Notes: generated from the sequence alone by a model not told the origin. A stretch of 64,000 bases of DNA from Macrostomum lignano (GCA_002269645.1 NIVC01001753.1:124001-188000), one strand, 5' to 3'; shown: positions 23,876 through 54,903, counted from the first letter of the stretch. Numbers and translations are program-made.

Positions 23876-23877
23876 AG

Positions 23878-28483: not shown

Positions 28484-30248
28484 CGATTCTATTGATGCGC
28501 GGCGCTTGACAACGACTTCGCTGTATCTCGAAATTGTCGTATCGTTTCGAGATCGGTCAACTGTTTCTTGTGGCGGCGTGACGCTGCTGTTTTGAGTTGA
28601 AGGTTGAAATCTGGCTTGATTATAAAAGCTTAAATTCCACTCACTAGAATGTATAATACAATCAAAGTCTTACCTTAAATTAAAACTGGTGGCAACATTA
28701 TTACCACTGCTGACGCGACGCCGCTTTGGGTGCGGAACGATGCTGAATGGTTGAAATAAAAATTACGACTAGTAAGTTTTTCAGCACAAAGTCATCACTT
28801 ATAACATAACATTTTCTGACACATGTTGCTAATCTAAGCTCATAAAAATAATCAGAAGAATAAAACAATCACAACGTACTTTTCGCTTAAAAAATCTTCA
28901 GCTTCAGCTTGAGCTTCAATCGCGGGTGCGGAAGCTCCAGTTGCGGAAGCCGAATCCGCAGTAGTCAAAGCGGTATCCTCTTGCCAAATTCGCTTACGGC
29001 AAGAATGCTTCTGAACGCCCCTGTGAGGGTATGCATTGAAATTATTACTATGTTGAGTTGAAACTTTCAAATTGATTTTATCTAGCTATATAATTTTTTT
29101 AAAACGAAGTTGCGTTTAATGTTTAAGTTTGTAAAAGTTGACAAAGTACTACAAAATTAAAAATTATTATTAGCATATAGCTTCTTACGTTTGATTCTCA
29201 GGAGCAGAGCCCACGTTGACTTTGTTTTCGTGGATGAGCCACTGCGCAATGCTAACAGCTTCGGATCTGTGAATTGTAGGACATTAAAAAATTAGAGAGA
29301 AGTGTGTACAATTACTGCAGATATACTAAAAGCGCAGCTAATCACTAATTCTAAACGGACAAAAATATGCGCAGCTTTCGAACTTACGTAGAGAGCAAGA
29401 TGTACTCCGATGCATCATCGGAGCAAATAGTTAAGTCCACCACAAGATTAGCATTCTCAATGGCAGTGATAGGCAGCGGCATGTTAGCTGAAAAATATGC
29501 GTTTGGAGCGTTTGAAAAATATGCGTATACACATGTAAAATGCCAGTTAGAAATTTCTTCAAAGTCACAGAGTAAATTAAAGAGTAACCCAAATATTGGC
29601 TTCTGTAGGTTGTAGGTACTACAATTCTTACTCCTACCTACTCCTACTAATACTACTGCCTGCAACTACATACTATTATCTACCTACTACTAGTACAAAC
29701 CAACTACTGTGTACTATTACCTACTACCGCACGCGAAGGCGTATTCAGCATGCCAGTGAAGTATGAGACAGACTAGGCCCATGGGCTAAGGTCTGCGATG
29801 CTTCACGCCTGCCCCTATCTTCAGCAGGTCAAGGCTGGTGGGAGGTCTGCACCCTCTATTTGCCTTTGGCAGCCGCAGACCCCCCCCCCCACGCTGTCTC
29901 GCAAGTCGACCCAGGGTACTCGTCCCCGCGTGTGTTCAAGGCAGTCCCTAGGGCTGCTGGACAGACTGGGCTCCGGCGCTGGCGACCCTATCCAGTGGCT
30001 TCGGCCGAATTTGGGTATGCGGGTCTGGCTCGCCAACCTGCAGGCCGTGGTACTGCTCAACGTACTCTCTAATGCCTAAGGTGTTGACCGTGCCGATGGG
30101 CTGGAAGGCCGGGGAGTAGTCCGGTCGCAAGCGGTCCCCCTCCTGGTGTCGGGCCAGCCTTGAGGGTGCTATTGGCCTACTGCCCGGTCAGGTGGAGCAG
30201 CCGGGTGGGTACCGCGCCCCTTTGAGGGTAGCCCACCAACCTTTTATC

Positions 30249-31754
30249 ATGGCCTTCGAGCCGACTATGGATAAACAAGCTATTTCTAGGGACGGGGACC
30301 CTTCTAAACCCCAACCTCAGTCCGAAGGACCGGCCGGCCCTGCTGGCAGATCCCAACCGACTGATTCAACTGTGGCAAAGGAAGGACCGGCTGGCTCTGC
30401 TGGCAGATCCGACCAGAGCTACCAAACTCAAAATACCCTAAGACCTGCCAGCTCCGCTGGTGGATCTAAGGGAACCGCGAGCTCTGAGCCTAAAGGACCG
30501 GCCAAATCTGGCAGATCCGATGAAGCTCAGCGGGCTCGGCTTGAGCGCAAACGCGCTAAACAACGCGCCAAAAGGCAGGCCAAGAAGGGAGCTGCGGGGG
30601 CCAAAGCGGCGGCGTCCACCATGGATGCTGAAGCGACTGGAGTCCCAAGGCAACCAGGCGGGCCGGCCGGTGGAAGCTCCAGTAGTTCAGCGGCGGCGCT
30701 CCCTGGAGCTGCTGCCGCGGCTGCTGAGGCCGAAACCACGGCGCAACAAATGGCCACTGCCAACAAGGAGGTTCCTTCGGGAGCTACCTTTGCGGCGAAG
30801 GCCAAGGCCAAAATCCCGGGAGTGATCATCCAAGGTCGCGACCAGGACTGGACCACTGATCAGCTTCAAAAAGTGTGGAGTGCTGTTGACTCCTATCTGA
30901 TTGAGCTGACTGTCGAGGAGGGAATCTCCATCGGCGTTGAGCGGATGGTGCTGCGAAGCACATTCGTTCTTATTGCTCCTAGCAGCGAGGAGGACGCTCG
31001 GCGGCTGCTCCAGCGGCTACCGACGGTCTCCTTGGATGCTGACCTTGGTGGAGCTCTTTTTCTTCGCGAGGGCCAGCGTCCAAAGACGATACCCTATGTG
31101 GTTTTCGTCCCTGCTAAGAGCACCGCAGCTGGACCAGACGTTATTCGCCGGGTCCTACTGCGTCTGAACCCCGACCTCCCTGCTAGTGGACTGGTGTATC
31201 ACCGCAAAGTCCGCAGGGGGGAGACGGGCAACTCAATTGTCCTCGGCCTTTCCAGCACTTGGGCGAGTCGGTACCCTAATGGATCCTCTTTCCAGCTGGG
31301 TGCCCTCAAGCTCAAGTTGCGCCGAGGAAAGTCTGCCAAAGGGAAGGCTACTGCCAACCCCGGCATCTCCGGCAAGAGCGGGGCGCAGTCTAAGGCCCAA
31401 GGAAAGGCGCAAGCCGATCCCAAAGCCAAAGCTGCATCTCGCCCCTCTGCTAGCAGCAGTTCGGCGACCGCGGTAACGGCTCCGGCCGAGCCCCGGGAAC
31501 CAAACCTGCCAGTCGGAGAAGGAGTTGAGGACGAGGCCGGGTCTTCGGAATCCGAGCTCTCCTCGGCCACCTTGGTGGGGTCTGAAGGTAAAGATGCAGG
31601 TGAGGAAGCTTCCTCCATCCTGTCATCGGAGCCTGAGGACTCTGCTGGGGGGGCCGGTGGGGGTGAGGAGGCCATGGACGTCGACCAACTCCCATCTCCC
31701 AGTCAAGCCCCAGCGGCCTGGGACGAGGACGATCTGTTGTCCAAGTCTCCTTGA
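30249..31754 (+). CDS. LINE ORF1 (gag-like nucleic-acid-binding protein)
   Basis: About 500-aa ORF directly upstream of ORF2 (first ATG at 30249). Basic and acidic low-complexity ends surround a folded core. Confidence 0.85.
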   Translation: MAFEPTMDKQAISRDGDPSKPQPQSEGPAGPAGRSQPTDSTVAKEGPAGSAGRSDQSYQTQNTLRPASSAGGSKGTASSEPKGPAKSGRSDEAQRARLERKRAKQRAKRQAKKGAAGAKAAASTMDAEATGVPRQPGGPAGGSSSSSAAALPGAAAAAAEAETTAQQMATANKEVPSGATFAAKAKAKIPGVIIQGRDQDWTTDQLQKVWSAVDSYLIELTVEEGISIGVERMVLRSTFVLIAPSSEEDARRLLQRLPTVSLDADLGGALFLREGQRPKTIPYVVFVPAKSTAAGPDVIRRVLLRLNPDLPASGLVYHRKVRRGETGNSIVLGLSSTWASRYPNGSSFQLGALKLKLRRGKSAKGKATANPGISGKSGAQSKAQGKAQADPKAKAASRPSASSSSATAVTAPAEPREPNLPVGEGVEDEAGSSESELSSATLVGSEGKDAGEEASSILSSEPEDSAGGAGGGEEAMDVDQLPSPSQAPAAWDEDDLLSKSP

Positions 31755-31793
31755 TGGCCCTGGGCTCTAGCCAGATATTGCATTTAATACAGT

Positions 31794-34700
31794 ATGACTA
31801 AGCTCCACGCTGCCAAAGGAGCGACATTCTGTCTGCAAATAAATTTACAGCATTGCGTATCTGCGTCAGTAAATCTGATGAAGATTGCTGAGCTGTACAG
31901 GCCAGGCCTCATCCTGATCCAGGAACCCTGGATGCGCAACGGTAAGTTGCCCAACATTCCCTCTGGCTACTCTGATTTTTATGTGTGTGGCCCGGGGAAC
32001 AGCCGCCCTAGAGCGGCTATCCTCGCTGCTAGCCATCTCCAGGCTTGGCTGAGGACTGATCTCTCTGATGGAGACCTTTGCGTCATCCAATCTAATCATT
32101 TCTCTCCGCGTACGTGTCTTGTTGCCTCGGTTTATATCCCAGGCGACAGAGACCCTGCTCCCGAGAGTTTACTGCGCCTTGCGCAGTACTGCGAGTCCCA
32201 GAACGCTGAGCTGTGCTTAGGGGGCGACCTCAACGCGCACCACAAGCACTGGGGCAGCAAAGATACCAACACTAGAGGAGAGGAGCTTCTGGCCCTCATC
32301 TCTAACACAAACCTCATGCTCTGCAACCGCGGCAGCACTCCTACCTTTAATAATGGCAGATGGACCGAGGTCCTCGACGCCACACTCGTCACCCCAAGAC
32401 TCTTTGACAGAGTCAAGGAGTGGAGAGTCTGGTCTGAGGAGCCCTCCCTGTCTGACCACTGCTTTATCGCCTTTAATATCGCGGACACTAAAACCCAGTC
32501 TCCGATCACTTGGAGACGCAATATCCGCAACACTGATTGGGCGGCCTACAAGGCTGCCCTTGATCTGCACCTGCAGGAACTCACGGACTTACGTCCGATT
32601 GAGACCTGCGAGGATGTGGATCATATGGCTGAGACGCTGACAGGTTGCATTATTGCAGCCTACGAAGCGGCTTGTCCTGCTCGCGCCTACAGAGGCAAGA
32701 CCTCGGCGCCGTGGTGGAACCCGGAGCTGGGGAAACTCAGGCGGAAGGCCAAAAGCCTTCATCGCCGTGCCATGAAGACCGGAAACCCGGAGGACATGGA
32801 GCTTTTCCGGCAAGCCTCCCGCAATTTCAAATCTGAAGTGCGCAAGGCCAAGGAATGTAAGTGGCGCCAATTCTGCAATGAATTGGATCAAGACAGACCT
32901 ACTTCTAGGCTTGTCAAGGCCCTTACAATGGACAAAATGTCCAAATTAGCCATGATCAAAAAAGATGATGGCTCTCTTACTAAAGACCCTGAAGAAGTGC
33001 TTCAGCATATGCTTAGCACATTCTTCCCGAGGGTACCTACTGCTAGACCGGAGCCCAACCATTCGATGGATGGAGCCACCCTAGCGGCGGGCATTGTCAC
33101 TGAAGACCTAATCGCTCGTGCGGTCAGAACCTTCAAACCCTTTAAATCTCCTGGACCTGATGGTATCTACCCTGTTCTCCTTCGTGAAGCAGCCAAGATA
33201 CCCTCGTTCCTGAGACTCACCCGCAATCTTATGCGGGCCTCTATCCAGCTGGGATACGTTCCCAAAAGCTGGACTGAAGCTCGAGTAGTCTTTATTCCCA
33301 AACCTGGGAAGGGTGACTACCAAAGCGTCAAGGCCTTCCGGCCAATTAGCTTAACGTCAGCAATGCTTAAGCTCACTGAGAGGCTTATTCTCTGGCGGCT
33401 GCTCTCCTGCGAGCTGACAGCGATGCCCCTCAGCAATAATCAGCACGCCTTCCGTACCGGGAGGTCGACTGACAGCGCCCTGCATGCGATTGTCGAAAAG
33501 ATTGAACGGGCGGTACTGGGTGACGGTTACGCCCTGGCTCTCTTTCTTGACATTGTTGGCGCCTTCGACAACGTTATCTTTGAAGCGTTTCAGAGGGCCC
33601 TTCAAAATCGCAAAGCTCATGCTACCCTCATACGGTGGATCATGTACATGATCTCCAACCGTACGGTCACTGCCCAACTTCTTGGGCAAACTGCCTCCAC
33701 CAGAGTCTGTAAGGGTGGACCCCAAGGCGGAGTCCTCACCCCGACGCTCTGGAACCTGGTCATGGACGCTCTTCTGAGTGACTCCCGACCTGACCCCGTC
33801 TTCAAAGTCGGGTATGCTGATGACGTCACGGCCATTGTGGCAGGACCGTCTCCCAGCACGCTCAGGGATCTGATGCAGAGCTTTATCCGCAAAGCAGAAT
33901 CCTGGGCCAATGACAATGGTTTGGAACTCTCTGAGCCCAAAACCGTTGCCATTATGTTTACCAGCAGACTACGCTGGAACATACGTCCTCTGCAGCTCTA
34001 CGGCAGAGATATTGCCTTCGCGCACCAGACCAGATGTCTCGGGGTCACACTTGACCACCGGCTCAACTGGTCCTTCCACGTGAAAGCAAAAGCTAAGCGT
34101 GCCTCAGCCATCCTGGCCCAGCTCCGACGAGCACTTGGCACTTCTTGGGGTCTATCCCCAAAGCGGCTTTGGTGGATCTATACTTCCGTAGTTAGACCTG
34201 CCATTACGTACGCCTCTGTTGTCTGGGTTAGCGCTACCCAGGTCAAAAGCCATGCAGACCTGCTCAACACGATCCAAGGCAGAGCGTGTAGGCTCATCTG
34301 CAACGCCACCAGGTCCACGCCCTTTGCTGGCATGGGGGCCTTTCTTAATCTTCCGCCTCTTGACCTCTTCATCAGGGGTGAGGCGGCTAGAACGACGCGG
34401 CGTCTAATTGATGCCGGCGTCAAATTCATTTACATGAGAGCACCTGCTAAGCGGAACCTTGTCCCGCATAGCGATCTGTGCCTCAACTTTCTCAACGAGT
34501 GTCAGGCCAATCGCGTCTTCACCGATGGCATTGCCTCAACGCTCAACCTGAGACAGCGCTACTCCGTAGCTATCGACTCGCGCGATAACATCAATGACCA
34601 TTGGAACCCTGGTGAGCTTCATTGCTACACCGACGGTTCTAAGCAGTCAGCCAACACCGGCTTTGGTGTTGGAATCTTTCTGAACGGGAGGGTCATCGCT

Positions 34701-35534
34701 ACCCACGCTCAATACACTGGGGTCAACTCCAGTGTTTTCCAAAATGAAGTTCTGGCCATCAGCTCCTGCACTGCAGAGCTTCTCGCCACTGGCGTTACTG
34801 GTAAGAACATCATTTTCCATTCGGACAGCCAAGCTGCCTTGCACGCCATCAGTGGCTGCAGCACCAACTCTGCTACAGTCCTTGACTGTATCAAACTCCT
34901 CAATGTGTTGGGTTCCGCCAACAAAATTACCCTTAAGTGGGTTCCGGGGCATGTGGGGATCCGAGGAAATGAGTTGGCTGACACCCTTGCAAAATTTGGT
35001 GCCTCCGGCTCCTCTCTCGGCCCCGAACCTCTTGTCCCGATTCCTGGCTGTGTCATCGACTCGCGCATCAAAGCGTGGATCAGGACTCAGCACCGCTCGA
35101 CTTGGGCGAACCGCACGAACTGCAGGCAATCCAGAGGCGCTGTCCCTCAGCCCTCTCACCAGCTCCGGAAGCTCCTCTTGCGCCTCTCGCGCAGAGACAT
35201 CCGGGCTGCCACCATGACCCTCTCTGGTCACGGCTGCTTCTCCAGGCACCAGTACCTGCAGGGCAACGCCACCAACGCCACCTGTAGTTTCTGCAACTCA
35301 GGTGACGAAACCGCTGAGCATTTCGTCAGCATCTGTCCCGCCTTCACGCGGGCCAGACTCACTTACCTCGGGCCACACACATCTATTACTGAAGCGTGCA
35401 AACCCGAAAACTTTAATCAGCTCATGCGCTACCTTCGGGCCACCCGCAGGGCTGAACTCTCCTTTCCAGAGAGCACCATAGCTGCTGGCGACACTGGGGG
35501 ACCTCCCTGGGCGGCGCCAACCCTCCGTCCATAG
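31794..35534 (+). CDS. LINE ORF2: AP endonuclease + reverse transcriptase + RNase H + CCHC
   Basis: QINLQH, QEPW, GDLNAHH and SDH (APE). PGPDG, FRPISL, QGGVLTP and YADD (RT). YTDGSK and WVPGHVGIRGNELAD (RNase H). CSFCNSGDETAEHFVSIC (finger). Confidence 0.98.
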   Translation: MTKLHAAKGATFCLQINLQHCVSASVNLMKIAELYRPGLILIQEPWMRNGKLPNIPSGYSDFYVCGPGNSRPRAAILAASHLQAWLRTDLSDGDLCVIQSNHFSPRTCLVASVYIPGDRDPAPESLLRLAQYCESQNAELCLGGDLNAHHKHWGSKDTNTRGEELLALISNTNLMLCNRGSTPTFNNGRWTEVLDATLVTPRLFDRVKEWRVWSEEPSLSDHCFIAFNIADTKTQSPITWRRNIRNTDWAAYKAALDLHLQELTDLRPIETCEDVDHMAETLTGCIIAAYEAACPARAYRGKTSAPWWNPELGKLRRKAKSLHRRAMKTGNPEDMELFRQASRNFKSEVRKAKECKWRQFCNELDQDRPTSRLVKALTMDKMSKLAMIKKDDGSLTKDPEEVLQHMLSTFFPRVPTARPEPNHSMDGATLAAGIVTEDLIARAVRTFKPFKSPGPDGIYPVLLREAAKIPSFLRLTRNLMRASIQLGYVPKSWTEARVVFIPKPGKGDYQSVKAFRPISLTSAMLKLTERLILWRLLSCELTAMPLSNNQHAFRTGRSTDSALHAIVEKIERAVLGDGYALALFLDIVGAFDNVIFEAFQRALQNRKAHATLIRWIMYMISNRTVTAQLLGQTASTRVCKGGPQGGVLTPTLWNLVMDALLSDSRPDPVFKVGYADDVTAIVAGPSPSTLRDLMQSFIRKAESWANDNGLELSEPKTVAIMFTSRLRWNIRPLQLYGRDIAFAHQTRCLGVTLDHRLNWSFHVKAKAKRASAILAQLRRALGTSWGLSPKRLWWIYTSVVRPAITYASVVWVSATQVKSHADLLNTIQGRACRLICNATRSTPFAGMGAFLNLPPLDLFIRGEAARTTRRLIDAGVKFIYMRAPAKRNLVPHSDLCLNFLNECQANRVFTDGIASTLNLRQRYSVAIDSRDNINDHWNPGELHCYTDGSKQSANTGFGVGIFLNGRVIATHAQYTGVNSSVFQNEVLAISSCTAELLATGVTGKNIIFHSDSQAALHAISGCSTNSATVLDCIKLLNVLGSANKITLKWVPGHVGIRGNELADTLAKFGASGSSLGPEPLVPIPGCVIDSRIKAWIRTQHRSTWANRTNCRQSRGAVPQPSHQLRKLLLRLSRRDIRAATMTLSGHGCFSRHQYLQGNATNATCSFCNSGDETAEHFVSICPAFTRARLTYLGPHTSITEACKPENFNQLMRYLRATRRAELSFPESTIAAGDTGGPPWAAPTLRP

Positions 35535-36319: not shown

Positions 36320-39300
36320 TTACAAAAGTAAATTTGTAAATAGGAAATAGGTTATAGGTAAATAGGTTACGCTGTCAATAAATAGGTAAGGCCTACTGTT
36401 TGCCTTTTTTTTCATTTGGAAGTAGGCGTTCTTCCATTTGTTGACGGTGCTTTCTGAAAGAGGCTTCAGAGCTTCGTCGCTCATATGGCGAAGCTGCGTG
36501 TGCTGAGCTATAATAATCTGCAGCGCCGTCTTGCTCGGTGGAATTGGCTGGCTGCTGTAGGGCCCGTTAGTCTGGACGGTTTCAACTACGAGTTGAGCCA
36601 GCAAGCGGCCGGCTGTCGACTCCTGCGCCAACTTGATCGATTCCTGGCGCTTTTCCGCTCGGGATTTGGCTACTGCTGACTGCTGACTGCTGACTGTTGA
36701 CTGGTTTAAAACCGAGCTTAAATTGCAGTCAGGTACTTTAGTGCTTCTCGGGGTCGACTGGATTGGAGCTGATGTCGTTGAGTTCAGTCCTAAGTTTTCT
36801 CGTGACCTTGATATGGATTAATGTGTGAAAAAAGTATGCATACATATTTCTCTAATTTTTAATTTTTAGATAATAGCTTTGTCGAAACGTAAGTTTTATT
36901 AAACTGCTGTCACTGCTGCATATTCTAAAGTGTCTCTAAAAAGCTGCAGAAAAACTTACTCCAAAAACCATTAGATAATAAGGTATTTAGGTAACTAGGT
37001 AATTGTAAGGGAATAAAATAGCATTAATTACTGGTTGAATGCAAGCTAAAAACTTACTACATTATATTGGTTGACTACAAGCTGTTTAAAACTTACTACA
37101 CCAATTTAAAGGGCCGTGCTTAAGAGAATAATTAACCACAATATTCTTTGAGGAAGACTCTGAAAAACTTACTGATCGAAAACGTGGAAGCTGTCAGCAG
37201 TCTTTGGATCGTTTTGCGTAACCAGTTCTAGCGCTGTCGCCCTGTTAATGATGGTTAGCGTTTTGGTAGGGCTTAATGGCTCATAGCAACTTATAATTTG
37301 ACTTGTTTGCATTCTATATTCTCATAAAATCTAAAAGTACACTGGTCAAGGCAATTCCTCTTTCTCTTACCATGAATTTGAGCTTTGCTTAGCTTCAGAG
37401 TCGAGGCGAAGCCGCTTTTCGCAAGGCTGCTGGTCGGTGCCCCCGATCCTTTTTGATGAAATTCAAGAATTTTTGAGAAGCAATCTGATAATTAAATATT
37501 TATTCAAAGAGCTTTTGTTCCCTTTATGCTGTAAAAAGTGCACATAAAATCATTACCTGTTATCTGGCTGGCAATTAGAAGCCCAGGCTCGCTTTCTTGG
37601 CGCGATGTCGCTGTTGCTGCTGCTGCTGCTGCTTTTGCGTCTGCGTCTGATTTTGTGATCCGAGCTAGTATTTCAAAGTTTGAAATCATTAGGGGAATCA
37701 TTAGAGGAATATTGACCCTAACCCTAACCCTAAATCATTACCTGTTATCTGGCTGGCAATTAGAAGCCCAGGCTCGCTTTCTTGGCGCGATGTCGCTGTT
37801 GCTGCTGCTGCTGCTTATGCTTCTGCGTCTGATTTTGTGATCCGAGCTAGTATTTCAAAGTTTGAAATCATTAGGGGAATCATTAGAGGAATATTGATAG
37901 TGAATAAATTAAGCAAAAAAACTGGGTTAACTTCTTCCCTTGTAGATTGTTTTGTTGATGAAATGAATTGGATTATAATTTGTGTGATATATTTATATGA
38001 GCAGTAATTCATAGACAATATTTAAAGAAAAATTCAACCTAAAAATGACAAGTATCTTCTTACCTTTTTCCTTCGACAACAGTTCGATAACAGTGGCTTA
38101 TTGTCGTTTGCTCAGCGGTCGCTTCGTCGATCGGGGAAAGGCATGCATCGTGCCTAAGTAGACAGTAAGCAGAAAGGATATGTGTTCGTTTTTTATTCAA
38201 CATTTTTCTCTGTATGATTTATTTGAACAATTGTTTTAAATAGTTTTCTTATTTCCATCAGACAAGCATAATATGCCTCTTACTTGATAGCCTCGAGGAA
38301 GACAGGTTGTTGTGGCTGGCTTACATTGCTCTCGATCTCGCTCTCGCTCTCGCTCTCGCCCTCACTATCTTCTTCAATGATAGGTGCAAGTTCTGCGCTT
38401 CCTTGAATCGGCAATGGCATCGAACGGACAGAGCAGCACATGGCTTGCAGCGAAGTCAGCGTGATTTGAAAATCGTGTGCTTTGTAAAATTTGCTGACGG
38501 TCTGCTCGGAGTGACGCCGGCCTAGGTGAGTGACCATTCGATTCTGCTCTGTACTTAAAAGAGCCTCAGACAGCGTCGAATGGGCTCGGCGAAGGTGAGT
38601 AGGCGTTACCTTCGTGTGCGGCGTTAATGTGTTTTCTGTATGCGTATGTGTACTAGATGTTGCATCTATGATAAATAAATAATTTTCTACAGTCACTCGC
38701 TGTGTCCAACAACAAAATTTCCTAACAGCTAGAGCTAGAAAAAGTTACTAAAAATTAAATAAAGTTTTGGTAATGGAAAATATATAACTCACATTATTGT
38801 CTCCAGTGACTTTTTTTAACAGAGTGGCGAGTGTTGCTTGTCCACTAGACCGATTGAGATAAGGCAAAAACCCTTTCTCCGAATCAAAGTTTGCTGGAAA
38901 AAGAGGCTGATGCTCAATAAAATCAGCCGTAGCCTCGCCAGTGAAGTTGCTTCTCAGGAATTCACGAAGCAGATTTGCGAACTTGTGAAATAGTATCACA
39001 AGTTCGCTAGATAAGAACAGCACTGGTTCGCCCTTGTAGTTAACAACTTTGTCTTTTACGTGTTTACACATGATATAGCTGGAGCCATCTTCTTGACGCC
39101 GAAAAAATAGCGGATCGAATAGATGGTAAAGACGAAGAAACCTAAGGTTAAAAGGATAGCGTGTTTTAAGACACTAAATATGTTAATTGCCTATTTCCAA
39201 AACAATTTCTTACCGGTATGAGTCGTAGCGCATATGCTGAAACCGCATGTGCGCTAGCTTTAGTACGGCGCCGAATGACCTGATCTCGTTAATTGTCAGC

Positions 39301-42300
39301 GTTGATATTTGGTCGCATTGGAGTATCTCCATGATCTTGTCATTGACTACTGGAGACAAATAAACAGTAGCCATCAGATTACGACACCACACGGGACCTT
39401 GGTCCCTACGCCGGTCGTCTTGTCGAAAGCAGCGGCTTGCGATGTTAGCCCGCTTACTAGCACGGGAAATTGGATTTTTCAACAGCGTAAGAGTGTTCTC
39501 TAATAGCTCCTTGCTGACACGCAGCTCGTGAAACAACTGCTTCGAGCTGCTTGAATGAAGAACCTCAGCTTCTAGCAGCGTCTGAGCGAGCCAGCGAAGC
39601 GCTAGCAGTTGTAGTTGTGAGCTTTTGCCTCCAACCCACCACAACGCGGTCGCTTCAAGGATATCGAGATCAAATATATCCGTTAAATAAACGTCCCTGC
39701 CGAGACCTGACACGGTGCGCCGCCATATCATGTCCAGTATGGACAGCTTTGATTCCAACGCCTCGTAGGCCGCAACACCCTCAGAAGTTTCCGGTTCATC
39801 TTTCCTAACCGGATCCGTTCGGATGTTGCGGGCGACTCCGAAGTCGCTTCTGTAGCAACCGACGTCTCGTTTCAGAAAGCGAAAAAGCTTTTCTCGACGA
39901 CCTGAATCCACCACAGTTGCAAGCCTCATCGGGTGAATAGCAGTAAACGGCCTCAGCCAATAAGGAGCATTGACTTGGCTACGCCTAGGGATGCTGAACA
40001 TAGGCTCCCTCATCTTAACGTCATAAGCAATGTCGTATGAGGGTACATCCAAGTAATGATACTTGACACCGTGGCTTCCCACAACGACAGGTAGACTCTC
40101 TTTAAGATGACGAAAATCCTGCTCACTAAGACTAAATGGTTCTGGCCAGGACTCAAAGAACGGAACGGAAGTTTCAGGAGCCAATGACGTTTCCTAAAAA
40201 AGGCAATAAAAGCATGAAACCTCATTAACCTCATATCCTTAGTTACTACATCAATATCTATATCAATCACTGCGGAAGTCCTACTCATGACTACAGACCC
40301 TTTTACAACTTATTGGCAAATATGTCGTCTTTCGTAACGTTATATTACCTTTAGTGTATGATCATCCTATATTAGGCGTGTCATTCCGGTGTATGAATGT
40401 CTTAAAATGTGTGCAGCCCTCCTAAAGAATAGATTATACTGACTAGCACTGAGCAGTTTACACGCGCTTAATTGAATCTCGACTTGGCTTTCATGTGCTC
40501 TATGATACTTGCCTATACAGTGAGTAGTAAGTATTTCAGATCAGATGTTAGGTAAGATTGGGGCATTCATGTGCATGTTCTTGTTCGCAACCGTAGAAAT
40601 CCATATCATAAACTTTATTATGAGTAGCGCAATGATCGTTTGAGAGTCCTGAAGGTAACTCTCACCCTCGTCAGGAGCACCGCCGCATGCCTATGTCAGA
40701 GTAGTAAGTTTTTCAGGGGTCATGCAATATCTGCCGTGTCTTGACCATACTGTCTTTAATGCCTCGTATAAGAATGTTGAAAGTCAATTGTTACTCGGAG
40801 AATATATCAAAGGAACTTATAAAAGTATTTTAGTAGAAATATGAGGGGCTGTTCGCCCCTTACGAGGGGCACTTCGCCCCTCATAATTGTAAGCCCGTCT
40901 TGTTTACTAAATATCGTCGCTCAGTAGAGTGATAAGCGTATCAAAATGACTGAGCGGACTCTTGCGATAAAGCAAAGATACGATATGAATTTCCCTGTCT
41001 TTTTATATTATTTCTTGAATCTGAAGAGAGAATAATGCTCCAGACATCTACTCTAGAAAATCAGTACACTTTCTTAGAAGGTCGATGTACTGATATGACG
41101 TTACTTTACTTTAGCTTCTGGCCATCCTAGATTTTGGTATTCGGACTTTCTGTTGTGTAAATATTCTGAAATCGTGTAGAGACCTCCTAAAGCGAAAAAT
41201 ATCCTAAGTAGTTGTCAAACATTTTTCTATGCGGCCAAGTGATTCTCGACTTGGCTGTTATGTGCTCTTTGATTTTTGCCAATATAGCGAGTAGTAAGTT
41301 TTTCAACTCAGAGGTTAGGTACTATTGGGGCATTCAAGTGCATGCGCTTGTTCCTAACCATAGAAATCCATATCATAAACTTTATTATGAGTAGCGCAAT
41401 GAACGTTTGAGAGTCCTAAAGTAGCTCTCACCCTCGTCAGGAGAACCGACGTATGCCTATGTCAGAGTAGTAAGTTTTTCAGGGGACGTGCAATATCTGC
41501 CATGTCATGACTATTCTGTCTTTAATGCCTCGTATAAGAAAGTTTAAAGTCATTTGTTACTTCGAGAATATATCAAGGAAGTTATAAAAGTATCTTAGTA
41601 GAAATATGAGGGGCTATTCGCCCCGTACGAGGGGCTTTTCGCTTATAAAATTATAAGCCTAGCTTGACTACTAAACATAGTCGCTCAGTAGAGTGATTAG
41701 TGTATAAAAATGACTGAACACACTCTTGAATAAAAAAGCAAAAAAATATAATAATGTTTCTGTACTATTCATAATTGAACCATAAATTGATCCCTTGCTC
41801 AAAAACTTATTACGCGAAATAATATTTGACTTTCTGACATACTAATACATCGAATTTACTGTCTGATAAATTCTCTTGGAATGACGTAAATATTGAGAAA
41901 CACTCACCGTTTGAAGATCCGGTACAAGGCCGGTTGTACTATTTGAGGCCGAACGCGGTGGTGGGAGAGGCACATACTTTGTTGGCCGCTGGGAAAGCAT
42001 TTCAGCCTGATTGAGGAAAAATTTAGATTTTGGATGACACTTTTATACTCAAGAAAAGTTACTTATGCTTACAGAGAAGACCAATTACAATATTAATTTA
42101 TTTAGACTCTAAAAAGAGTTACGTACTACAGGCTTTCAGAAAATTATCTAGAGCATAAAACTCGCTAAGACTTGCTAGTTACTGAAAATAAATTTGTAAC
42201 GAAAATCTTAGTAAATGTTGGGTTTGCGGTTGCACTTTTATGCTTTAGACCTCGTTTACTTTCTATGTTATCTTACTCCCTTTCTCTCGTGCGCTGTCTC

Positions 42301-45060
42301 ACTCTAGCAGTGGTTACTCATATGAACCTGCGTGTTAGTGCACGTTGTAGCCCTCGACCTATCAAATAGTTTCAATAATCAATGTACATTTATCGACCAG
42401 TCTGTGCATAATAAATAGATCGCAAATTTTGGCTCTGGCCCTCAACTGTTCATTTGTCAGCTAACATGACCTGACTAGTGTTATTCTGCTTACAGTAGTA
42501 AACTATCCTAATAGCTAATATTTTAAAGCAATAACTGACAGCTACCCTTCTTGTCTGATTATACATCATTATAGATAACAAGTAAAAACGACAAGCAAAG
42601 ATGAGAAGATTATTGTGAACCATGAATTGTTCCCTTCCTGAAAAACTTACTACGCGAAATAATGTTTGACTTTCTGACACAAAAATACATTGAATTTACT
42701 GTCTGATAAATTCTTTAGGAATGACGTGAATATTGTGACACACTCACCGCTTCATGAGAATTTCCGGTCGGTTGGACCGTTGAAGAACGGCCGGTTGGAC
42801 CGTTGTGGCACTTCGGCACCGTTGTGGCACTGCTGGCACTGGCCGAGGCCGAATGCGGTGGCCGCTGAGGTGAGGCCGAGCCACGCTGAGGCACCAGAGG
42901 CACCAGAGGCTCGCAAGGTGAGGCCGAAAGGTGAGGCTCGCAAGGCACATCATCATCAGTCGTTTGCCACTGGGAAAGCAATTCAACCAGATTGAGGAAA
43001 AAATTAGATTTTGGATGACACTTTTATAGTCTAGAAAACCCTAACCACTTTTATAGTCTAGAAAAAGTTACCTAATGCTTACAGAAAACCAATTACAATA
43101 TTCATTTATTTTGATTCTAAAAAGTGTGACTACAGGCTTTCAGAAAATTATATAAAGTATAAATAGAAATCAAGTTCTTGCCCTTGAAAATCTTAATGAT
43201 CGCGTTCTGAATACTTTTTATTAAAAACTTCCGGTTACAAGTATTGATCTGAACGTGATTACTAAAAGAATTGTGCCCTTCCTGAAAAACTTACTACGCG
43301 AAATAATGTTTGACTTTCTGACACAAAAATACATTGAATTTACTGTCTGCTAAATTCTTTAGGAATGACGTGAATATTGTGACACACTCACCGCTTCATG
43401 AGAATGTCCACGGCCGGTTGTACTATTTGAGGCCGTACGCGGTGGTGGGAGAGGCACATCATTATTTTGCTGCTTTGGCGCCATCGAACGCTGCTCTGGG
43501 TGAGGCATTGTTCTTATCCGCGGCCGAGGCTTATGATCCTGTAAATAAAATAAAAAGTAAAGAGGTAAAAATTAATGAAACGAAAACTGTTTTCATCTTT
43601 TATGCTAAAGTTTTTTATATGCTTCGATTCAAAATTTACCCGCCATGACGAAGGATCAACAATGAGATCTTCTAATTTGCAAAGGTCCTCCGTTCTGGCA
43701 GGTGCTGATGAGGCTCCGGACGGGTTTCGTAGCCTTGGTGCCGGGATCGGACGGAACGCTGGTTGGCTACTCGATCGCTGTGTAAATTAACGTTTGGGTT
43801 GCTTCAAAACTCGTAGTTAAGAAATAAAAATTCATAAGAATAATTTTCGTTGTATGCTTTCATTTAATAATTATTTTCTCCCTTATGTTTTGTACATAAC
43901 ATTTTACATAGCATGTACAGCCATGACTCGCACGTTGTATACCTTCATGTATTTTAACTTACCACTAGAGGCACTCTGCAGTTAACTGTTAAGTTCTGAA
44001 GAAAACTCTCCATTTTCGCAGCCTTGGCAGCCTCGTCGAATGCGCTGCCCAGAATAAGTTCACGAGGAGGTTCGGGCCGAAGCTTTTTAGATGGCCCGGA
44101 CGGGCCGGATGTAATCGACGAGGGCGTTGATGCTGGTCTTGTCGCTGAAGCCTGTCAGGAAAAATGTAACATTTGAGCTTGATTGAGAAAGCTGTGGTAG
44201 ACATTTATTTTTCCAGAACGCAATCTTTTTTCTTCAAAATAGGCATCAAGTAAAGAGGAAATTTTAGCTATTGATAGATATTTATGCAATTAATAACATA
44301 TCTACTGTTCTATTCATTGTTTCATAAGTTACCCGTTTACCATACAAAAAAGATAGGTCCTTACGAAAAAGTTACTACCTATGATCAACGAGATTGAAGT
44401 CTACTGTCGACAGCCGAGCATATTGATGGCTCTACAAATCTTAAAATAAGGAAGAAGGGCCCTAACCATGAGCACCACAGGATTAGGCCCAAATCCTAAC
44501 CCTGGACCCTGATCAAACACCTGATCTATCAATGTTGTCTATCTATTCATAAGAGTAATCACAAATTATAGCAAATAAAAATTATTTAACCTTAGCTCAA
44601 ACAAAATAAAATATGTAAATCATAGCAGACGAAACGAAAAACTTACCACTCTTACGGTTGGAACCGTTAGCCGATTCTCAAACCGCTTCCAACATTTTGG
44701 ATGCGGCGGTAATGGCCGATCTTGTTGTAGAGCTTGCCTGGCGGAATGCGCGTACTCTACGGCGAATTCTCTGCACAGCTGATTATGCGCGATGTGATCA
44801 TAAGTCTGCTCTGAGGACTGAAACTGATGAGCCGCTCTGTAGTGGTCTCTTAGGTGCATATATGCTTCAAAGCATAATGAGCACATGGAAGCATTATGCC
44901 GCACCTTTTCCTCAAACTTTGCGAACCATCGAAGGTCTTCTAATCGATGCACGTACTCCTTGTGCACAACATTGATGTGTCTTTTGAGGTTGTCTAACCT
45001 CATTTGCTGTAGGCAAATCGCACATTCTTTCAATTTCTCGGAATGGTGACTTCTACGCAT
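36320..45060 (-). CDS. Multi-exon C2H2 zinc finger - linker - tyrosine-recombinase-like protein (~1200 aa, hand-spliced)
   Basis: Exons 45060-44647, 44151-43963, 43777-43640, 43538-43392, 42969-42748, 41988-41908, 40193-39214 and 39141-38793 join in frame with GT-AG (840 codons). These are followed by ~38635-38284, 38153-38064, 37846-37742, 37664-37557 and 36806-~36390. Candidate catalytic residues: QHMR, HVK, TPTHLRR, RRHS, KFY. The exon 8-9 junction phase is unresolved. Confidence 0.65.
40460..41730. repeat. Two copies of satellite module A inside an intron of the recombinase-like gene; another copy at 45340-45890
   Basis: Same blocks as in 23878-27770. Confidence 0.9.
42630..43400 (-). 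repeat. Exon+intron cassette B, inverted relative to the copies at 50330-52080
   Basis: ORF 42715- is almost identical to ORF 50473+. Confidence 0.92.
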
Positions 45061-47100
45061 TCCTTCTTGGCTCTAAATTAAGTCTCTCGAGACTCTTAAG
45101 AAAAAGAGCCTTGTTTGTCTTGTTCAGCTGGACTAATATAATCTATCAGGTGGAGGAGGGGATGTTGTCGAATTGAGGGGTGTCTTGCTGTGTCCTGTGT
45201 ACATGATTGGTTGAGGGGTACCGAATTTCGCCTAAAGAGCTGTCCCTGTTCGGCTTAATACTACTTACGACCAGTAGTAAAGTTCGATTAAGAAATCTTA
45301 CGCTAACCCATATCCCGATTTGCATCATGATTTAAAAGCAGCGGCTCTGTTGTACACAACTTTCTGTTGTATATCCTAAAATCGTTTATAGACCTCCTAA
45401 GGCGCACAATAACCTGAGTAGTTCTCAAACAGTTTTCATGCGGCTAAGTGAATCTCGACTTGGCTGTCATGTGCTCTAAGATACTTGCCTATACAGTGAG
45501 TAGTAAGTTTTTCAACTCAGAGGTTAGGTACTATTGGGGCATTCAAGTGCATGCTCTTGTTCTTACCTGTAGAAGTCCATGTCATACACTTTATTGTGAG
45601 TTTCGCTATGAAAGTTTTAGAGTCCTGAAGTAACTCTCACCCTCGGCAGGAGCACCGACGTATGCCTATGTCAGAGTAGTAAGTTTTTCACGGGACATGC
45701 AATATCTGCAATGTCCTAACCATACTCAGTCTTTAGTGTTTCTTATAAGAATGTTTAGAGTCGTTTGTTACTTGGAGAATATATCAAAGGAACTTTTGAA
45801 AGCATTTTAGTAGAAATATGAGGGGCTCTTCGCCCCTCTCGAGGGGCATTTCGCCCCTCAATATTATAAGCCTTTGCACAGCTTAATCGGCTTAACGCCT
45901 ACGAGGTTCAGGATGATTAACAGTTACATCGTTATTTCTTTAGTTTCTAGTTAATAAAGTGACAGAACTTTTTGATCGTCCCTCGTACCTCGTCCCTCGT
46001 ACTACGACCAGTAGTAAAGTTTGATTAAGAAATCTTACGCTAACCCATACACTTTACCCTAACCCATATCCTGATTTACATCATGATTTAAAAGTAGCGG
46101 GTCTGTTGTAGGGCCCACATGTTGCAAACTAAAACTAAAATTAATAAGAACCCAATAATGTTTAAAAATGCCTACCACTTTTATAAGAAAGGTAGCCATT
46201 TTTTGAAAAGGTAAGCTAGCAGAAAATTCATGACAATCAAACTGTCGCTGTCACTGCATACTAACTGATAACACTTACTCTTTGTATGCACACAATAACT
46301 GTTATGAAAAACTTACTTTCTATAAGGACTATAATACCTTTTACAATATTAATTGTTTCTGAAGACGCAGATTTATGAAAGCAAGATAATATCATTTGCT
46401 TTGAAAAATTGCGTAATGGTGTAGCTAGCGGAGATTTGTTTCTGTGGAAACTCTATACAATACAATACAATACAATATAATTACAAATAAACCGAGACAT
46501 TTTATCGCCATTATTCAAGGCTCCATGAATTGAAAAATTCTCTTACAATTTTAACTGTACACAAAGTTCAGCGGAACCACCAAAGTAAACAAACTATTGG
46601 CAAGCCCTGACCACCTAGGCGTAGCGCACGAGTGCATCAATGATTATTCAATAATTTAAGAAGCTATTCTGAACTTTAGGCCCATGACAGAACGGACCCT
46701 AGCAACCGTGGGACAGAAAGTTAAATTATTTTAAACTACTCGCTCGTTTCAAATATTTTGTCGCCATTGTAAGTAACAAGCCGTTACTGGTATTGTTCTA
46801 TTGTTTCTACTGTTGGTGAAGTCTTAAAAGTCAAAGTCTTTGAAACTCTTGTATCCATGCCAATAATCTGGCATCCGCGTGTGGCCTAACAAAATATGAG
46901 GACTTCCTCACTCCCACTCTGATGACGTCTGATGACGACCAAATCAGGTTTACCTCCATTCCGATTGGACAACTGGGTCCAGACTGTCTAATTGGAGGTA
47001 ACTGGCTAAAACTAAACAATAAAACGACTACCATAGAGTTCAAAATGCCAACTCAGCACAATTATTACTTTTAGCTAAGGTCTTCTAAAAGCACGAAAAA

Positions 47101-49652: not shown

Positions 49653-52475
49653 ATGGCTGAATTCCTCAGCTGCCCCATATGTTTTTTAACAAAATATATG
49701 CATGTTGCTAGGTCATACAACATGAGGAAACATATTATCAATGTCCATAAATTGAACACCGACTCTACGGAGTTGGCAATAAAATTTGCCAAACTAAAAA
49801 AATATAAAGCAACCGAGCTTTACATGTGCCCCACATGTGTCCATGTAGGCACAAAAGACTCGTTGCGAATGCATATGAAGGCGAAACATAATGAAGGGAT
49901 GCCAAAGAATACGCTGGACGAGGCACAAAACAACGCACAGAGTTATCTCTCAATGTGCACTGAGTTTTTTCGCAGTGGATGCATGGGCCAGGTGCCTGGG
50001 CATCCCAGGAACAGGGCAAGTATTGCTAAATATACTTTGCTAAATATTACCGTGTTTACGAGAAGTGCATATATTTTAACAGTGATGTATATAAAGTACC
50101 AATTTTATTTTACGAACTACGTACAAGAAGCGTGGAGGCAACTAAGATTAAGGAGTAGTCTTTGTAACAAAAATTCAAACAACTTCCCCCGTATCCAGGC
50201 TGCGAAACGTCCACTCGTCAACTCGTCAAGTGACCAACCCAGCAAACGGACAAAGGTAAGTATTTCGGTTCTGCAAACCACTTTTCTAATGATTTTTATA
50301 CTTTATATAATTTTCTGAAAGCCTGTAGTAACACTTTTTAGAATCAAAATGAATATTGTAATTGGTTTTCTGTAAGCATTAAGTAACTTTTTCTAGACTA
50401 TAAAAGTGGTTAGGGTTTTCTAGACTATAAAAGTGGCATCCAAAATCTAATTTTTTCCTCAATCTGGTTGAATTGCTTTCCCAGTGGCAAACGACTGATG
50501 ATGATGATGTGCCTTGCGAGCCTCACCTTTCGGCCTCACCTTGCGAGCCTCTGGTGCCTCTGGTGCCTCAGCGTGGCTCGGCCTCACCTCAGCGGCCACC
50601 GCATTCGGCCTCGGCCAGTGCCAGCAGTGCCACAACGGTGCCGAAGTGCCACAGCGGTCCAACCGGCCGTTCTTCAACGGTCCAACCGACCGGAAATTCT
50701 CATGAAGCGGTGAGTGTGTCACAATATTCACGTCATTCCTAAAGAATTTAGCAGACAGTAAATTCAATGTATTTTTGTGTCAGAAAGTCAAACATTATTT
50801 CGCGTAGTAAGTTTTTCAGGAAGGGCACAATTCTTTTAGTAATCACGTTCAGATCAATACTTGTAACCGGAAGTTTTTAATAAAAAGTATTCAGAACGCG
50901 ATCATTAAGATTTTCAAGGGCAAGAACTTGATTTCTATTTATACTTTATATAATTTTCTGAAAGCCTGTAGTCACACTTTTTAGAATCAAAATAAATGAA
51001 TATTGTAATTGGTTTTCTGTAAGCATTAAGTAACTTTTTCTAGACTATAAAAGTGGTTAGGGTTTTCTAGACTATAAAAGTGTCATCCAAAATCTAAATT
51101 TTTCCTCAATCTTGCTGAAATGCTTTCCCAGTGGCAAACCAATGATGATGTGCCCTGCGAGCCTGTGGTGCCTCTGGTGCCTCAGGTCTCCGGTGACTCG
51201 GCCTCACCTCAGCTGCCATCACATTCCGCCTCGGCCAGTGCCACAACGGTGCCAAGGAATTGTCCAACCGACCGGAAATTCTCATGAAGCGGTGAGTGTG
51301 TCACAATATTCACGTCATTCCTAAAGAATTTAGCAGACAGTAAATTCAATGTATTTTTGTGTCAGAAAGTCAAACATTATTTCGCGTAGTAAGTTTTTCA
51401 GGAAGGGCACAATTCTTTTAGTAATCACGTTCAGATCAATACTTGTAACCGGAAGTTTTTAATAAAAAGTATTCAGAACGCGATCATTAAGATTTTCAAG
51501 GGCAAGAACTTGATTTCTATTTATACTTTATATAATTTTCTGAAAGCCTGTAGTCACACTTTTTAGAATCAAAATAAATGAATATTGTAATTGGTTTTCT
51601 GTAAGCATTAAGTAACTTTTTCTAGACTATAAAAGTGGTTAGGGTTTTCTAGACTATAAAAGTGTCATCCAAAATCTAAATTTTTCCTCAATCTTGCTGA
51701 AATGCTTTCCCAGTGGCAAACCAATGATGATGTGCCCTGCGAGCCTGTGGTGCCTCTGGTGCCTCAGGTCTCCGGTGACTCGGCCTCACCTCAGCTGCCA
51801 TCACATTCCGCCTCGGCCAGTGCCACAACGGTGCCAAGGAATTGTCCAACCGGCCGTGGACATTCACATGAAGCGGTGAGTGTGTCACAATATTCACGTC
51901 ATTCCTAAAGAATTTAGCAGACAGTAAATTCAATGTATTTTTGTGTCAGAAAGTCAAACATTATTTCGCGTAGTAAGTTTTTCAGGAAGGGCACAATTCT
52001 TTTAGTAATCACGTTCTGATCAATACTTGTAACCGGAAGTTTGAAAGTATTCAGAACGCGATCATTAAGATTTTCAAGGGCAAGAACTTGTAACTTGATC
52101 TTGATCTTAAAATTGGTTTCTTATATTGGTTTCTTTTCCGTATTGGTTCGTGCATTTAATGTTCAATTTTGTTTCATTTAGGATTTGAAGACGCTTACGT
52201 GTAGAACGCACTTTAATTTACTGAATTCTGCGCAAAGTGATCTGGCGCGCAGGATTCAGTACGCTTCAAGCGAATTCGCAAATTGGACAGAAGACGAGAA
52301 GGGCCAGTTTTTACAAGCGTTTAAAAAATTCGGCAAAGAGTTTTCGAAGATCGCCGCCGCCATCCATAGCAAGACTATTGCACAATGTGTGGCATTTTAT
52401 TATAGCTCAAAGTATGAGCCTAAATTTAAGAATATGTACGCCGCCAAGAAGCGAGCAGCCAGGCGGAAGCGTTGA
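49653..52475 (+). CDS. Multi-exon two-C2H2 zinc finger protein ending in a SANT/Myb domain
   Basis: CPIC...HIINVH and CPTC...HMKAKH fingers. Phase-0 exons 49653-50255, 50485-50709, 51714-51875 and 52182-52475 (middle copy 51132-51291 is frameshifted). Last exon WTEDEKGQFLQAFKKFGKEFSKIAAAIHSKTIAQCVAFYY is a typical SANT. Confidence 0.72.
50330..52080. repeat. Tandem triplication of exon+intron cassette B (~580-640 bp)
   Basis: ORFs at 50468, 51112 and 51694 (offsets 644 and 582). Confidence 0.92.
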
Positions 52476-52754
52476 TGAATTACATAATAATTATAATATT
52501 ATTTCTTTAAGACAATTTATTTGTGCAAATAATTCAGGTTCAGGCATTATCTTATTTGAAAAACTTTTCTTTCTTTTTATTATATTCTTTCTGATTTTAT
52601 CTGATTTGTGAGTTTGAGAAATAAATAAACCGTTTAAAAGTATTGTTTTTGATTTTGAGAAAAAAATAAGCTGTTTAAAAATATTTAACGATGCGTAATT
52701 TTCTCGATTTCCCCTATTTTAAATATATAATTTAACTAGAATCGAGAAAAGCAG

Positions 52755-54444
52755 ATGCGAGCTTTGGAATCAGAAAACGCCTGGCTAAAAGAAATGCTGC
52801 GAATTCAGCACGTCCTCATTATAAGCCAACGCAGGACCCTAGAATCGGTTCAAGGTTCTCCAAACCCAAAAATGCCTAGTGTAAGCCGTAAAATTTTAGA
52901 TACCAATTCTTAATTCCATATTTTAACTAAGCATTCATAGTCTTTCTGCGAAAGCTTTAAATAAAAAAAGTAGTCAATTTACAAACTTATAAAAAAGTTT
53001 ATAAGCACAATCAAGTCGTTTAGTGTTCAGTGTCCAATAATCTTTTTATTATCCAACACGCTTTTTCCAAGTAAGTTTTCCATGCTTTTAAGGGCAAATG
53101 AATCAAAATTACATGATAACTTTAGCTAAATATATTTATATAACCTCAAATATAACCTGTCCAGCCAGCTGAAGGTGCCGGTGCCGGTGCTGCCGGTGCC
53201 ACTATGACGGCCGCCTACACTGCCACATCCGCTGCTACCGCCACCTCCGCTGCTACTTCCACCACCGCCACCTCCGCTGCTACCTCCACCACCACCAGCT
53301 CCGCTGCTGCCGCTGTAAGTATTTTGTATCTGCTAGTATTCACGTTTACTTACTTGTAGCAGATCTATATAAGCGGTATTCAGCACGCTATGCAGAAAGA
53401 TAGCATAGAAACCCTGGCGCAAATTTTACGAGCTCGTAGTATAGTATAGCATGGCATAGCATGATACCTTGCCCCAGATTCTACACAGGCCTACGATATC
53501 GTATAGATGTAAATTAGCAAGATGTACATTAATGTTCATTCGATCTAAATACTACTCAATATAGACACCGGACGCGCGTCGGTCCGTTATTAATGGATCC
53601 TTGCCTGGAGGGCCATTATTCGATGTATGTAATAAATATTTATTGTCTGGTTTAATTGTTATTTTTCGTCTTTTATCTACTACTTTTAAAGTACTTTTAC
53701 TTATACCCGTATTATTTTCTTTTATACCTTTTGTATTTTGAGTCCTAAATCGTAAGTCCATAAGCTCTTAACCTCGTAGTTGAGGTTATACTTTAAGTCT
53801 CTACATGCTCATACAAGCCTCATACATACTTTAATTGAAAAAATATAGGTAGACCTCGATGCCTCATTCGGCAGTGGCGACGTCGGCAGTGGCAGTGGCA
53901 ACGACGAAGGCCCTGCCGACGTCACTATCCGCGGCCCTACGCGGGGAGCTAGCTTAAAGGGTGCCCGAAAGGCAGCAGGACAAGCAGAAGTCCTCCGGCG
54001 GCTCCTTAACAACGATGACTCAGCAGTAACTGTTAGTGCTACCCGGAGCAAAGGCCGCGGAGCTTTTGCTGCGTGTGCCCTCGCCAGAGGAGCATACGTA
54101 TGCGAGTATGCAGGTAAGCTTCTTAGCAAGACGGAATCCGACACTCGCTACGTCGAGCTCGCCGAGGCCGACAAAGACACGTTTTTTTTATTTAACTTTG
54201 ATTTCAATGGCCGGGAATATGCTATCGACGCCACGGACACCGATCGCGTCGGTTCTTAAATCATTCTCGGACAAAAAAAAACTGCCGAGTAGTCACCACC
54301 GGTGTCCAATGTCCGGGAGGCGTGATTCGACCGGCCCTATATTTCCAGACTACAAAATATGTTCCGAAGGGACGTGAACTTTTATTCGACTACGGCCCTA
54401 GGGACGCGGAAACTCTGGAGAGTTGTAAGTGGCTGAACGATTAA
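52755..54444 (+). pseudogene. SET8/PR-Set7 (H4K20 methyltransferase)-like SET domain gene, frameshifted just before NHS; missed by the ORF track
   Basis: Phase-0 exons 52740/52755-52880, 53165-53314 and 53849-54444. SKGRGAFA...VCEYAGKLL...FLFNF...YAIDAT, then a frameshift at ~54254-54258, then LNHS...ELLFDYG...WL*. AATAAA at 54445. Confidence 0.85.
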
Positions 54445-54903
54445 AATAAAACTCGTTCTAAAAATATTCCCGTCAGAAATCAATACAAGATAAAGCTTAA
54501 ACATACTTAAAAAATCGATTTAGATCACTTACAATTCTTTACTTAATAGCTTAATTGCTTAGTTGCTTAATACTTAATTACTTCATGGCTGATTTATTGC
54601 TCATAATTTTTTTCATTGACCTCCTTATATTTTCTTTTTTAATTTTTGGTTTGCTTAGTACTTCGTATTTTACTTTGCTTACAATTTTGTGTTGCTTTGC
54701 TTATCATTTTGCTTATTGGCTTGCTTTCCGCATTATTTTGCTTATTATTTTGCTTTTTGGTTTGATAATTGAAGATTTTCTTTCCCTAGTGTGCCATGCT
54801 TCGAAAAAAATAACATGGTCAATAATGAGATAAGAATGTCGCAGCATTTCCAAGAAATAAATTCGATTACTTAATTCGAAACTAATTAATGTAAAGTTCC
54901 CGG

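Follow-up and report, generated by a model that had tools for sequence, protein, structure and literature searches.

Gene structure of the locus

A stretch of 64,000 nucleotides of the Macrostomum lignano genome (GCA_002269645.1, NIVC01001753.1:124001-188000), called the window below and numbered from its first nucleotide, carries on its minus strand a predicted multi-exon gene that is unannotated, real and intact. We describe this gene, whose core contains a candidate tyrosine recombinase domain, together with the repeats and the genes that surround it.

The exon chain was rebuilt from canonical GT-AG splice sites, resulting in 15 exons that run from 45060 to 36323 and form 3819 nt (1273 codons) free of stops, closed by a TAA terminator at 36322-36320. 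In a bacterial-style list of open reading frames (ORFs), the open stretches of this chain appear as fragments only, and the gene is hidden in the way that a first-pass annotation of this DNA had proposed. The same annotation had joined eight consecutive exons in frame over 840 codons. We obtained 837 codons for exons E1 to E8, or exactly 840 if the alternative E1 donor at 44647 is used, with phase 0 at every junction except E7/E8 (phase 2). Further exons do follow E8 as had been claimed; their number had been given as five, for a total of 13, whereas we find seven pieces (E9, E10, E11a, E11b, E12, E13 and E14).

Two properties of the chain are independent of the choice of reading frame. Every exon forms a GC island (0.42-0.63) between AT-rich flanks (GC of 0.20-0.42), the pooled values being 0.506 for exons versus 0.334 for introns, and the introns contain 108 to 128 stops per frame.

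A conserved core and its relatives

The exon structure of E7 to E10 is established, and these four exons code for a core of about 560 residues whose protein family is very small and lineage-restricted. When 1.84 billion representative proteins were searched exhaustively with HMMER, only four relatives were recovered, all of them singletons from SRA assemblies in a 15-billion-protein collection. P0001 is an ORF of 780 amino acids (aa) on an intronless contig of 2.6 kb, and remains open to the 5' end of the contig. Being intronless, this contig is probably a transcript. P0002, P0003 and P0004 come from a different species, referred to as species B, where they are exon ORFs in short genomic contigs (L002-L004). 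No relatives came from word-indexed searches that used the core protein or two alignments as queries, low-complexity words having probably swamped the candidates, nor from scans of metagenome and viral contigs for conserved peptide patterns.

E7 (40193-39214, minus strand, as for all exons of the gene) holds 327 open codons, which cover a conserved N-terminal helical domain and the start of the recombinase-like domain with its candidate Arg I. It is 28-40% identical to P0001, P0002 and P0004, and the E7/E8 junction is crossed colinearly by P0001 and P0002 (…YDSY-R-FLRLYH…). E8 (39141-38793) codes for a beta-hairpin with the candidate Lys, followed by a helix and a PLFPA motif (38906-38892). 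E9 (38609-38284, alternative acceptor 38699) contains the Arg II, His III and Tyr motifs and then an acidic tail. E10 (38153-38064) is a short exon (…CLSPIDEATAEQ…) of phase 2-2.

The first-pass annotation had held that joining exons 8 and 9 needs a micro-exon or a frameshift. We rejected both, because E8 ends in phase 0 and is followed by two in-frame acceptors for E9, aag/GTA at 38609 and cag/CGA at 38699. The latter has the better polypyrimidine tract and would add 30 residues. Species B carries an intron at the exact E8/E9 position (…TGVEK/gtgaga … cag/ITVTHVRRAH…), and P0001 joins the residues flanking this position directly. Since these two relatives agree, E9 most likely starts at 38609 (VTPTHLRR).

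The E9 donor (ATCAA/gtaaga, phase 2) overlaps an apparent TAA. In species B as well, a phase 2 GTAAG donor contains the apparent stop that follows E9, and the next exon of species B is homologous to E10 (LSPIAEAAIER versus LSPIDEATAEQ here). The similarity score of E10 was reached by 4 of 2000 shuffles, and E10 was the top-scoring piece downstream. With a shared E9 donor and a homologous E10, the gene therefore continues downstream, as had been supposed. Finally, 70 alignment columns are identical between two other homologues and 52 of these are also retained here, which argues against a decaying pseudogene; the gene looks functional, in agreement with the earlier suggestion that it is functional or recently so.

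A recombinase-like domain in the core

The five motifs that had been singled out as catalytic were all found at the positions claimed for them: QHMR at 39239-39228, KHVKDK (which includes HVK) at 39065-39048, TPTHLRR at 38606-38586, GRRHS at 38522-38508 and KFY at 38492-38484. Their conservation in the family is plain: R (in HMR), K (in CKH or DK), R (in LRR), H (in RRHS) and Y (in FY) are invariant among three homologues that are 29-40% identical. The candidate catalytic residues thus follow the order of the tyrosine recombinase superfamily, and they do so with canonical-like spacing: 31 to 36 residues between Arg I and Lys, 26 between Arg II and His III and 9 between His III and Tyr. The corresponding spacings in Escherichia coli XerD are 24, 23 and 9; the XerD sequence used for comparison was 99.7% identical to an E. 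coli record. An 'LFP' segment and a 'P-x-x-L-R-x-A-x-x-T' segment are also present here as in XerD.

The order had been described as R-K-HxxR-H-Y. The R, K, R, H and Y of this description stand, in order and in spacing; the His of HxxR does not. The conserved Arg II is the first Arg of LRR, and the position -3 from it is occupied by Thr, Thr and Lys in the homologues, so that the canonical His II is absent in the ungapped register. Two homologues have a His at -2 from Arg II, where P0001 has an Asp, and a reading of H-L-R-R as HxxR uses the second Arg, which is missing from P0001. Residues other than His can occupy this position in topoisomerase IB and in telomere resolvases.

Profile comparisons were carried out with hhalign in local mode, using the Crypton and DIRS recombinase-domain sequences of Additional file 4 of Kojima & Jurka 2011 (PMC3212892), to which six bacterial recombinases were added as a comparison profile. 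Colinear alignments spanning Arg I to Tyr were obtained with the CryptonI+A, CryptonA, DIRS and bacterial recombinase profiles. The best score (21.4, P 0.019) was obtained against CryptonI+A, for which a column-shuffle null gave 13.1 +/- 2.4, none of the 120 shuffles reaching the observed score. Two AlphaFold models, of 503 aa and 243 aa, were compared with 350,542 PDB chains using Foldseek. Cre came first for both, filling all of the first 18 places for the 503-aa model and all of the first 3 for the 243-aa model. The predicted order of secondary structures, namely a helix, a beta-hairpin, a long helix and further helices, fits a tyrosine recombinase catalytic domain, and the predicted local distance difference test (pLDDT) score is 70-86 across the helical part of E7.

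Several results weigh against a recombinase domain besides the missing His II. The hhalign P-values range from 0.019 to 0.35, with HH-suite probabilities of 0.2-2.5%, and the same tool scores pairs of recognised recombinase groups at 22-83, so that 21.4 only equals the weakest true pair. Pfam gave no genuine family match to the single exons or to the joined core, Phage_integrase and DUF3504 being absent even at E <=10, and PDB sequence and profile searches with the core were empty. Pfam matches to U71, OSTMP1 and TrkH were discarded as noise. Both structural models, built from alignments of 4 to 5 sequences, are of low confidence (pLDDT of 49.5 and 52.5, and below 50 over box II). Their matches to Cre have E-values of only 0.05-0.06 with template modelling (TM) scores of at most 0.30, and a library of viral structures yielded no integrase or otherwise informative match. 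All formal measures of similarity lie below accepted thresholds, as would be expected if the core were not a tyrosine recombinase but a lineage-specific nuclear protein, a helical and basic one in which the R-K-R-H-Y pattern and the Cre matches had come together by chance. We regard this as unlikely. Four recombinase profiles agree on a single colinear register from Arg I to Tyr, with a score that shuffling does not reach, and two separate models both place Cre first. Moreover, few columns of this divergent family are invariant and the five catalytic positions belong to them, and the His-Tyr spacing is exactly 9. The balance favours a very divergent recombinase-like domain. The first-pass claim of a match to the tyrosine recombinase fold thus holds for the motif pattern and is no more than suggestive for the fold itself, which, like any activity, is to be taken as a prediction from sequence. 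The accompanying remark that the protein diverges from Crypton and DIRS enzymes is supported. Recognised groups score 28-83 among themselves, compared with the 21.4 obtained here against CryptonI+A, and the divergence is too great for a tree with the recognised Crypton groups.

Exons flanking the core

E1 (45060-44656, or to the alternative donor at 44647) is an ORF that begins with the start codon, immediately preceded by an in-frame stop. It codes for two C2H2-like zinc fingers, CAIC...HINVVH (CxxC at 45024-45013) and CSLC...HYRAAH (CxxC at 44883-44872), and both units fit the CxxC-x(9-12)-HxxxxH definition of a C2H2-type finger. A paralogous two-finger exon lies at 49653-50068 on the plus strand; only 28% identical to E1, it keeps all eight Cys/His ligands (BLASTP E 2e-6). 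The Pfam zinc-finger matches are below threshold for both exons, with E-values of 0.09-0.17 for E1 and 0.0016 for the paralogue.

E2 (44151-43963) is Ser/Pro-rich with a basic patch, of phase 0-0, and is bounded by cag/ and /gtaagt; its GC content is 0.54, versus 0.33-0.37 in its flanks. E3 (43777-43640) is Pro/Ser-rich, also of phase 0-0 and with canonical sites, at a GC content of 0.57 versus 0.25-0.28 in its flanks. E4 (43538-43392), E5 (42969-42748) and E6 (41988-41908) are paralogous Pro/Ser-rich exons of phase 0-0, each bounded by cccag/ and /gtgagt.

Downstream of the core, all pieces are GC islands of phase 2-2 with canonical sites. E11a (37846-37742) and E11b (37664-37557) are Arg/Ser-rich and arise from a 182-bp tandem duplication, E12 (37448-37371) and E13 (37289-37173) follow, and E14 (36806-36323) lies inside an open stretch of 165 codons; E11a to E14 make up the putative C-terminal tail. 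Three TTAGGG units are found on the minus strand at the junction of the 182-bp duplication (37716-37733).

We infer that E1 to E6 and E11 to E14 belong to the same transcript as the core. What ties E1 to E6 to the core in the sequence is a common strand, compatible phases, splice signals and base composition. Compared with the sequences of the homologues, neither block finds support: the E5-type exons set against the N-terminal exons of the homologues, and the E11-E14 tail set against the C-terminus of P0001, gave low-complexity matches only, none above shuffles. The three blocks may then be separate neighbours on one strand, two or three genes in all, namely a zinc-finger gene (E1-E6), a recombinase-like gene (E7-E10) and a tail gene (E11-E14), whose in-frame join exists only on paper. 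Homologue support is indeed confined to E7-E10, the recovered part of P0001 has no zinc finger, E4 to E6 lie in tandem repeat units of which the neighbouring gene has a frameshifted copy, and short symmetric exons are easily chained by the choice of sites. Against separate genes, all the junctions are phase-compatible without adjustment, the GC islands and canonical sites follow each other on one strand, and neither a stop nor a new start shows up from one block to the next. Because the contig of P0001 ends with the ORF still open on the 5' side, the N-terminus of that protein is not covered, and the conserved phase 2 donor shows that the gene passes the apparent TAA after E9. On the whole we hold separate genes to be rather unlikely, and a conserved core preceded by two zinc fingers to be the probable arrangement. 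As for the zinc finger-recombinase gene of the first-pass annotation, the two-finger exon is there, and its link to the core is a matter of strand, phase and composition.

The head-to-head neighbouring gene and the surrounding repeats

The paralogous finger exon at 49653-50068 opens a neighbouring gene on the plus strand, head-to-head with the recombinase-like gene. Along the stretch 49653-54441, this finger exon is followed by E5-type repeat exons, by a Myb/SANT exon at 52185-52475 (Pfam 3e-10), by a coiled-coil-like ORF at 52740-52910 and by a KMT5A/SETD8-like SET domain at 53849-54441 (PDB E 1e-14), an enzyme type whose occurrence marks this repeat-rich DNA as animal.

The two genes share repeat units. 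E4, E5 and E6 each lie within one unit of a tandem repeat of 640-980 bp (family D2), and inverted copies of these units, with 92-98% identity, lie at 50295-52090 on the plus strand, in the neighbouring gene. The shared inverted units (42624-43427 on the minus strand, 50295-52090 on the plus strand) each hold a Pro/Ser-rich ORF running from cccag/ to /gtgagt. One copy in the neighbouring gene, at 51078-51321, is frameshifted. Such an arrangement suggests a gene conversion or a duplication that occurred recently, or else a mobile unit that became exonised.

That the introns are filled with repeats, as had been noted before, is readily seen: intron 6 holds two copies of a repeat family of about 765 bp, and introns 4 and 5 consist of tandem units. 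The family of about 650-765 bp is both tandem and dispersed, with copies 85-99% identical at 19548-27768, 40454-41734, 45373-45873 and 54889-57248, one of which is directly upstream of E1. A motif (G)TAGTAAGTTTTT(CAG) is frequent on the minus strand (36900-37175, 42640-42660, 43280-43300), in introns and repeat units, and may represent decoy 5' splice sites in series or a part of a repeat consensus.

Other elements lie further away. An apparently intact non-LTR (long terminal repeat) retrotransposon occupies 30192-35534 on the plus strand, tail-to-tail with the gene, with a GC content of 0.53-0.60 in an AT-rich region. Its ORF1 (520 aa) has no Pfam match and its ORF2 (1246 aa) codes for an endonuclease, a reverse transcriptase and an RNase H. 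A direct segmental duplication of 4.8 kb (14020-18798 and 58483-63262) shows 99.8% identity between its copies, each of which contains a 256-aa ORF (15452-16222 and 59915-60685); the ORF at 15452-16222 gave a weak match to the PC4 transcriptional coactivator (Pfam E 9e-6). A long tandem array, with self-BLAST offsets in steps of about 23 bp, extends over 11351-12608. No Rfam match was found in the window.

Proposed function and origin

Taking these results together, we favour reading the locus as a Crypton-like recombinase gene, lineage-restricted and probably domesticated, with a very divergent catalytic domain, and give this reading a probability of roughly 0.6. The C-terminal 200 or so residues of the core would most likely be an extremely divergent Crypton-type tyrosine recombinase catalytic domain, comprising in order a helix that terminates with Arg I, a beta-hairpin with the Lys, the 'LFP' segment, a helix P-x-x-L-R-x-A-x-x-T with Arg II, and L-G-x-x-H-S-x7-F-Y, with His III and the putative nucleophile Tyr. 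The helical region that precedes it may act as a core-binding domain. The upstream GC-island exons most likely supply the two C2H2 zinc fingers and a Pro/Ser-rich linker, and the downstream exons an acidic, Arg/Ser-rich tail. Such a product would be a nuclear DNA-binding protein, holding DNA by its zinc fingers and by a clamp formed of the helical and catalytic domains, and the KFY tyrosine may have kept the capacity for 3'-phosphotyrosyl linkage.

Cryptons code for a tyrosine recombinase only, have no terminal repeats and are present in animals including insects (PMC3212892). The locus could then be the copy of a Crypton-like DNA transposon, mobile or else old and immobilised, whose finger and tail exons came from the element or from captured neighbouring sequence. 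In line with such an origin, animal Cryptons give the best profile match, the strand of the gene is devoid of reverse transcriptase, and transposons and repeats are very abundant in the region. The gene is however present as one copy within the 64-kb window, its locus is 8.7 kb long and satellite-like repeats have invaded its introns. The gene has intron positions in common with a relative at only 40% identity, it has retained family-specific residues, and the singleton relatives are unlike a proliferating family. A transposon copy thus appears improbable. The shared intron positions, the single copy, the length of the locus and the repeat-invaded introns make the gene resemble a Crypton-type recombinase that has been domesticated or immobilised more than an element that is mobile at present, and a domesticated or long-immobile gene also fits better than an active element with family members that are singletons.

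Domesticated Crypton genes have precedents. PMC3212892 describes genes with a DUF3504 domain (WOC/ZMYM2-4, QRICH1, KIAA1958 and KCTD1), which pair this domain with zinc fingers and have lost most of the catalytic tetrad. A bolder possibility, which we consider doubtful at best, is that the present gene codes for a still catalytically competent, zinc-finger-guided tyrosine recombinase, a cellular gene of an unrecognised and deeply divergent eukaryotic branch that could serve in the programmed rearrangement or resolution of DNA.

If the preferred reading, a domesticated Crypton-like gene, is right about the fold and the active site, the locus would represent a very divergent new lineage of eukaryotic tyrosine recombinases, carried by an intron-rich cellular gene with zinc fingers. 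The few site-specific recombinases of eukaryotes would gain a further candidate. Since its catalytic residues are kept, unlike those of the DUF3504 domestications, one would also have to ask whether animals put a tyrosine recombinase to use in some DNA transaction of the cell. On a more modest reading, the locus contains an unannotated gene family with almost no relatives among 15 billion proteins, and shows exon-bearing tandem repeats common to two head-to-head genes.

Comparison with known recombinase systems

DIRS-like recombinases align with the core colinearly and marginally, with 'GRRHSeeT..FY' here versus 'GRWkS..T...FY' there. DIRS-like elements differ from this locus, which has no reverse transcriptase, RNase H or methyltransferase on the same strand, and a DIRS-type element was rejected because the strand of the gene carries no reverse transcriptase. 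The only one nearby belongs to a separate long interspersed nuclear element (LINE), at 31794-35534 on the plus strand.

Cre, XerD and lambda Int share the order and the spacing of catalytic residues with this family, and Cre is the top Foldseek match in the PDB. There is no significant similarity in sequence or profile (hhalign P 0.26, no Pfam match), and the protein described here is about twice as long, eukaryotic and encoded with introns.

The DUF3504 genes (PMC3212892) are alike in being multi-exon host genes that join a Crypton-derived domain to zinc-finger modules. Their zinc fingers are of the MYM type and those found here are C2H2-like. No Pfam match to DUF3504 is obtained, and the present family keeps Arg I, Lys, Arg II, His III and Tyr. 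DUF3504 genes are bilaterian-wide, whereas this family is tiny and lineage-restricted.

The animal CryptonA and CryptonI elements differ from this protein by its non-canonical His II, its large conserved N-terminal domain, its probable zinc fingers and its long tail, animal Cryptons having no extra C-terminal domain (PMC3212892). The locus differs too, being single-copy in the window, intron-rich and extended over 8.7 kb, and the similarity to this family is far weaker than that between any two recognised recombinase groups. Like this gene, for which the domain identity is a prediction, these Cryptons have a eukaryotic tyrosine recombinase-type domain that is not accompanied by a reverse transcriptase. 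Their box II regions are similar, with 'FRRTSATL' and 'GGWKSSTVAEGY' in CryptonI corresponding to 'LRRAHSTL' and 'GRRHSEQTVSKFY' here.

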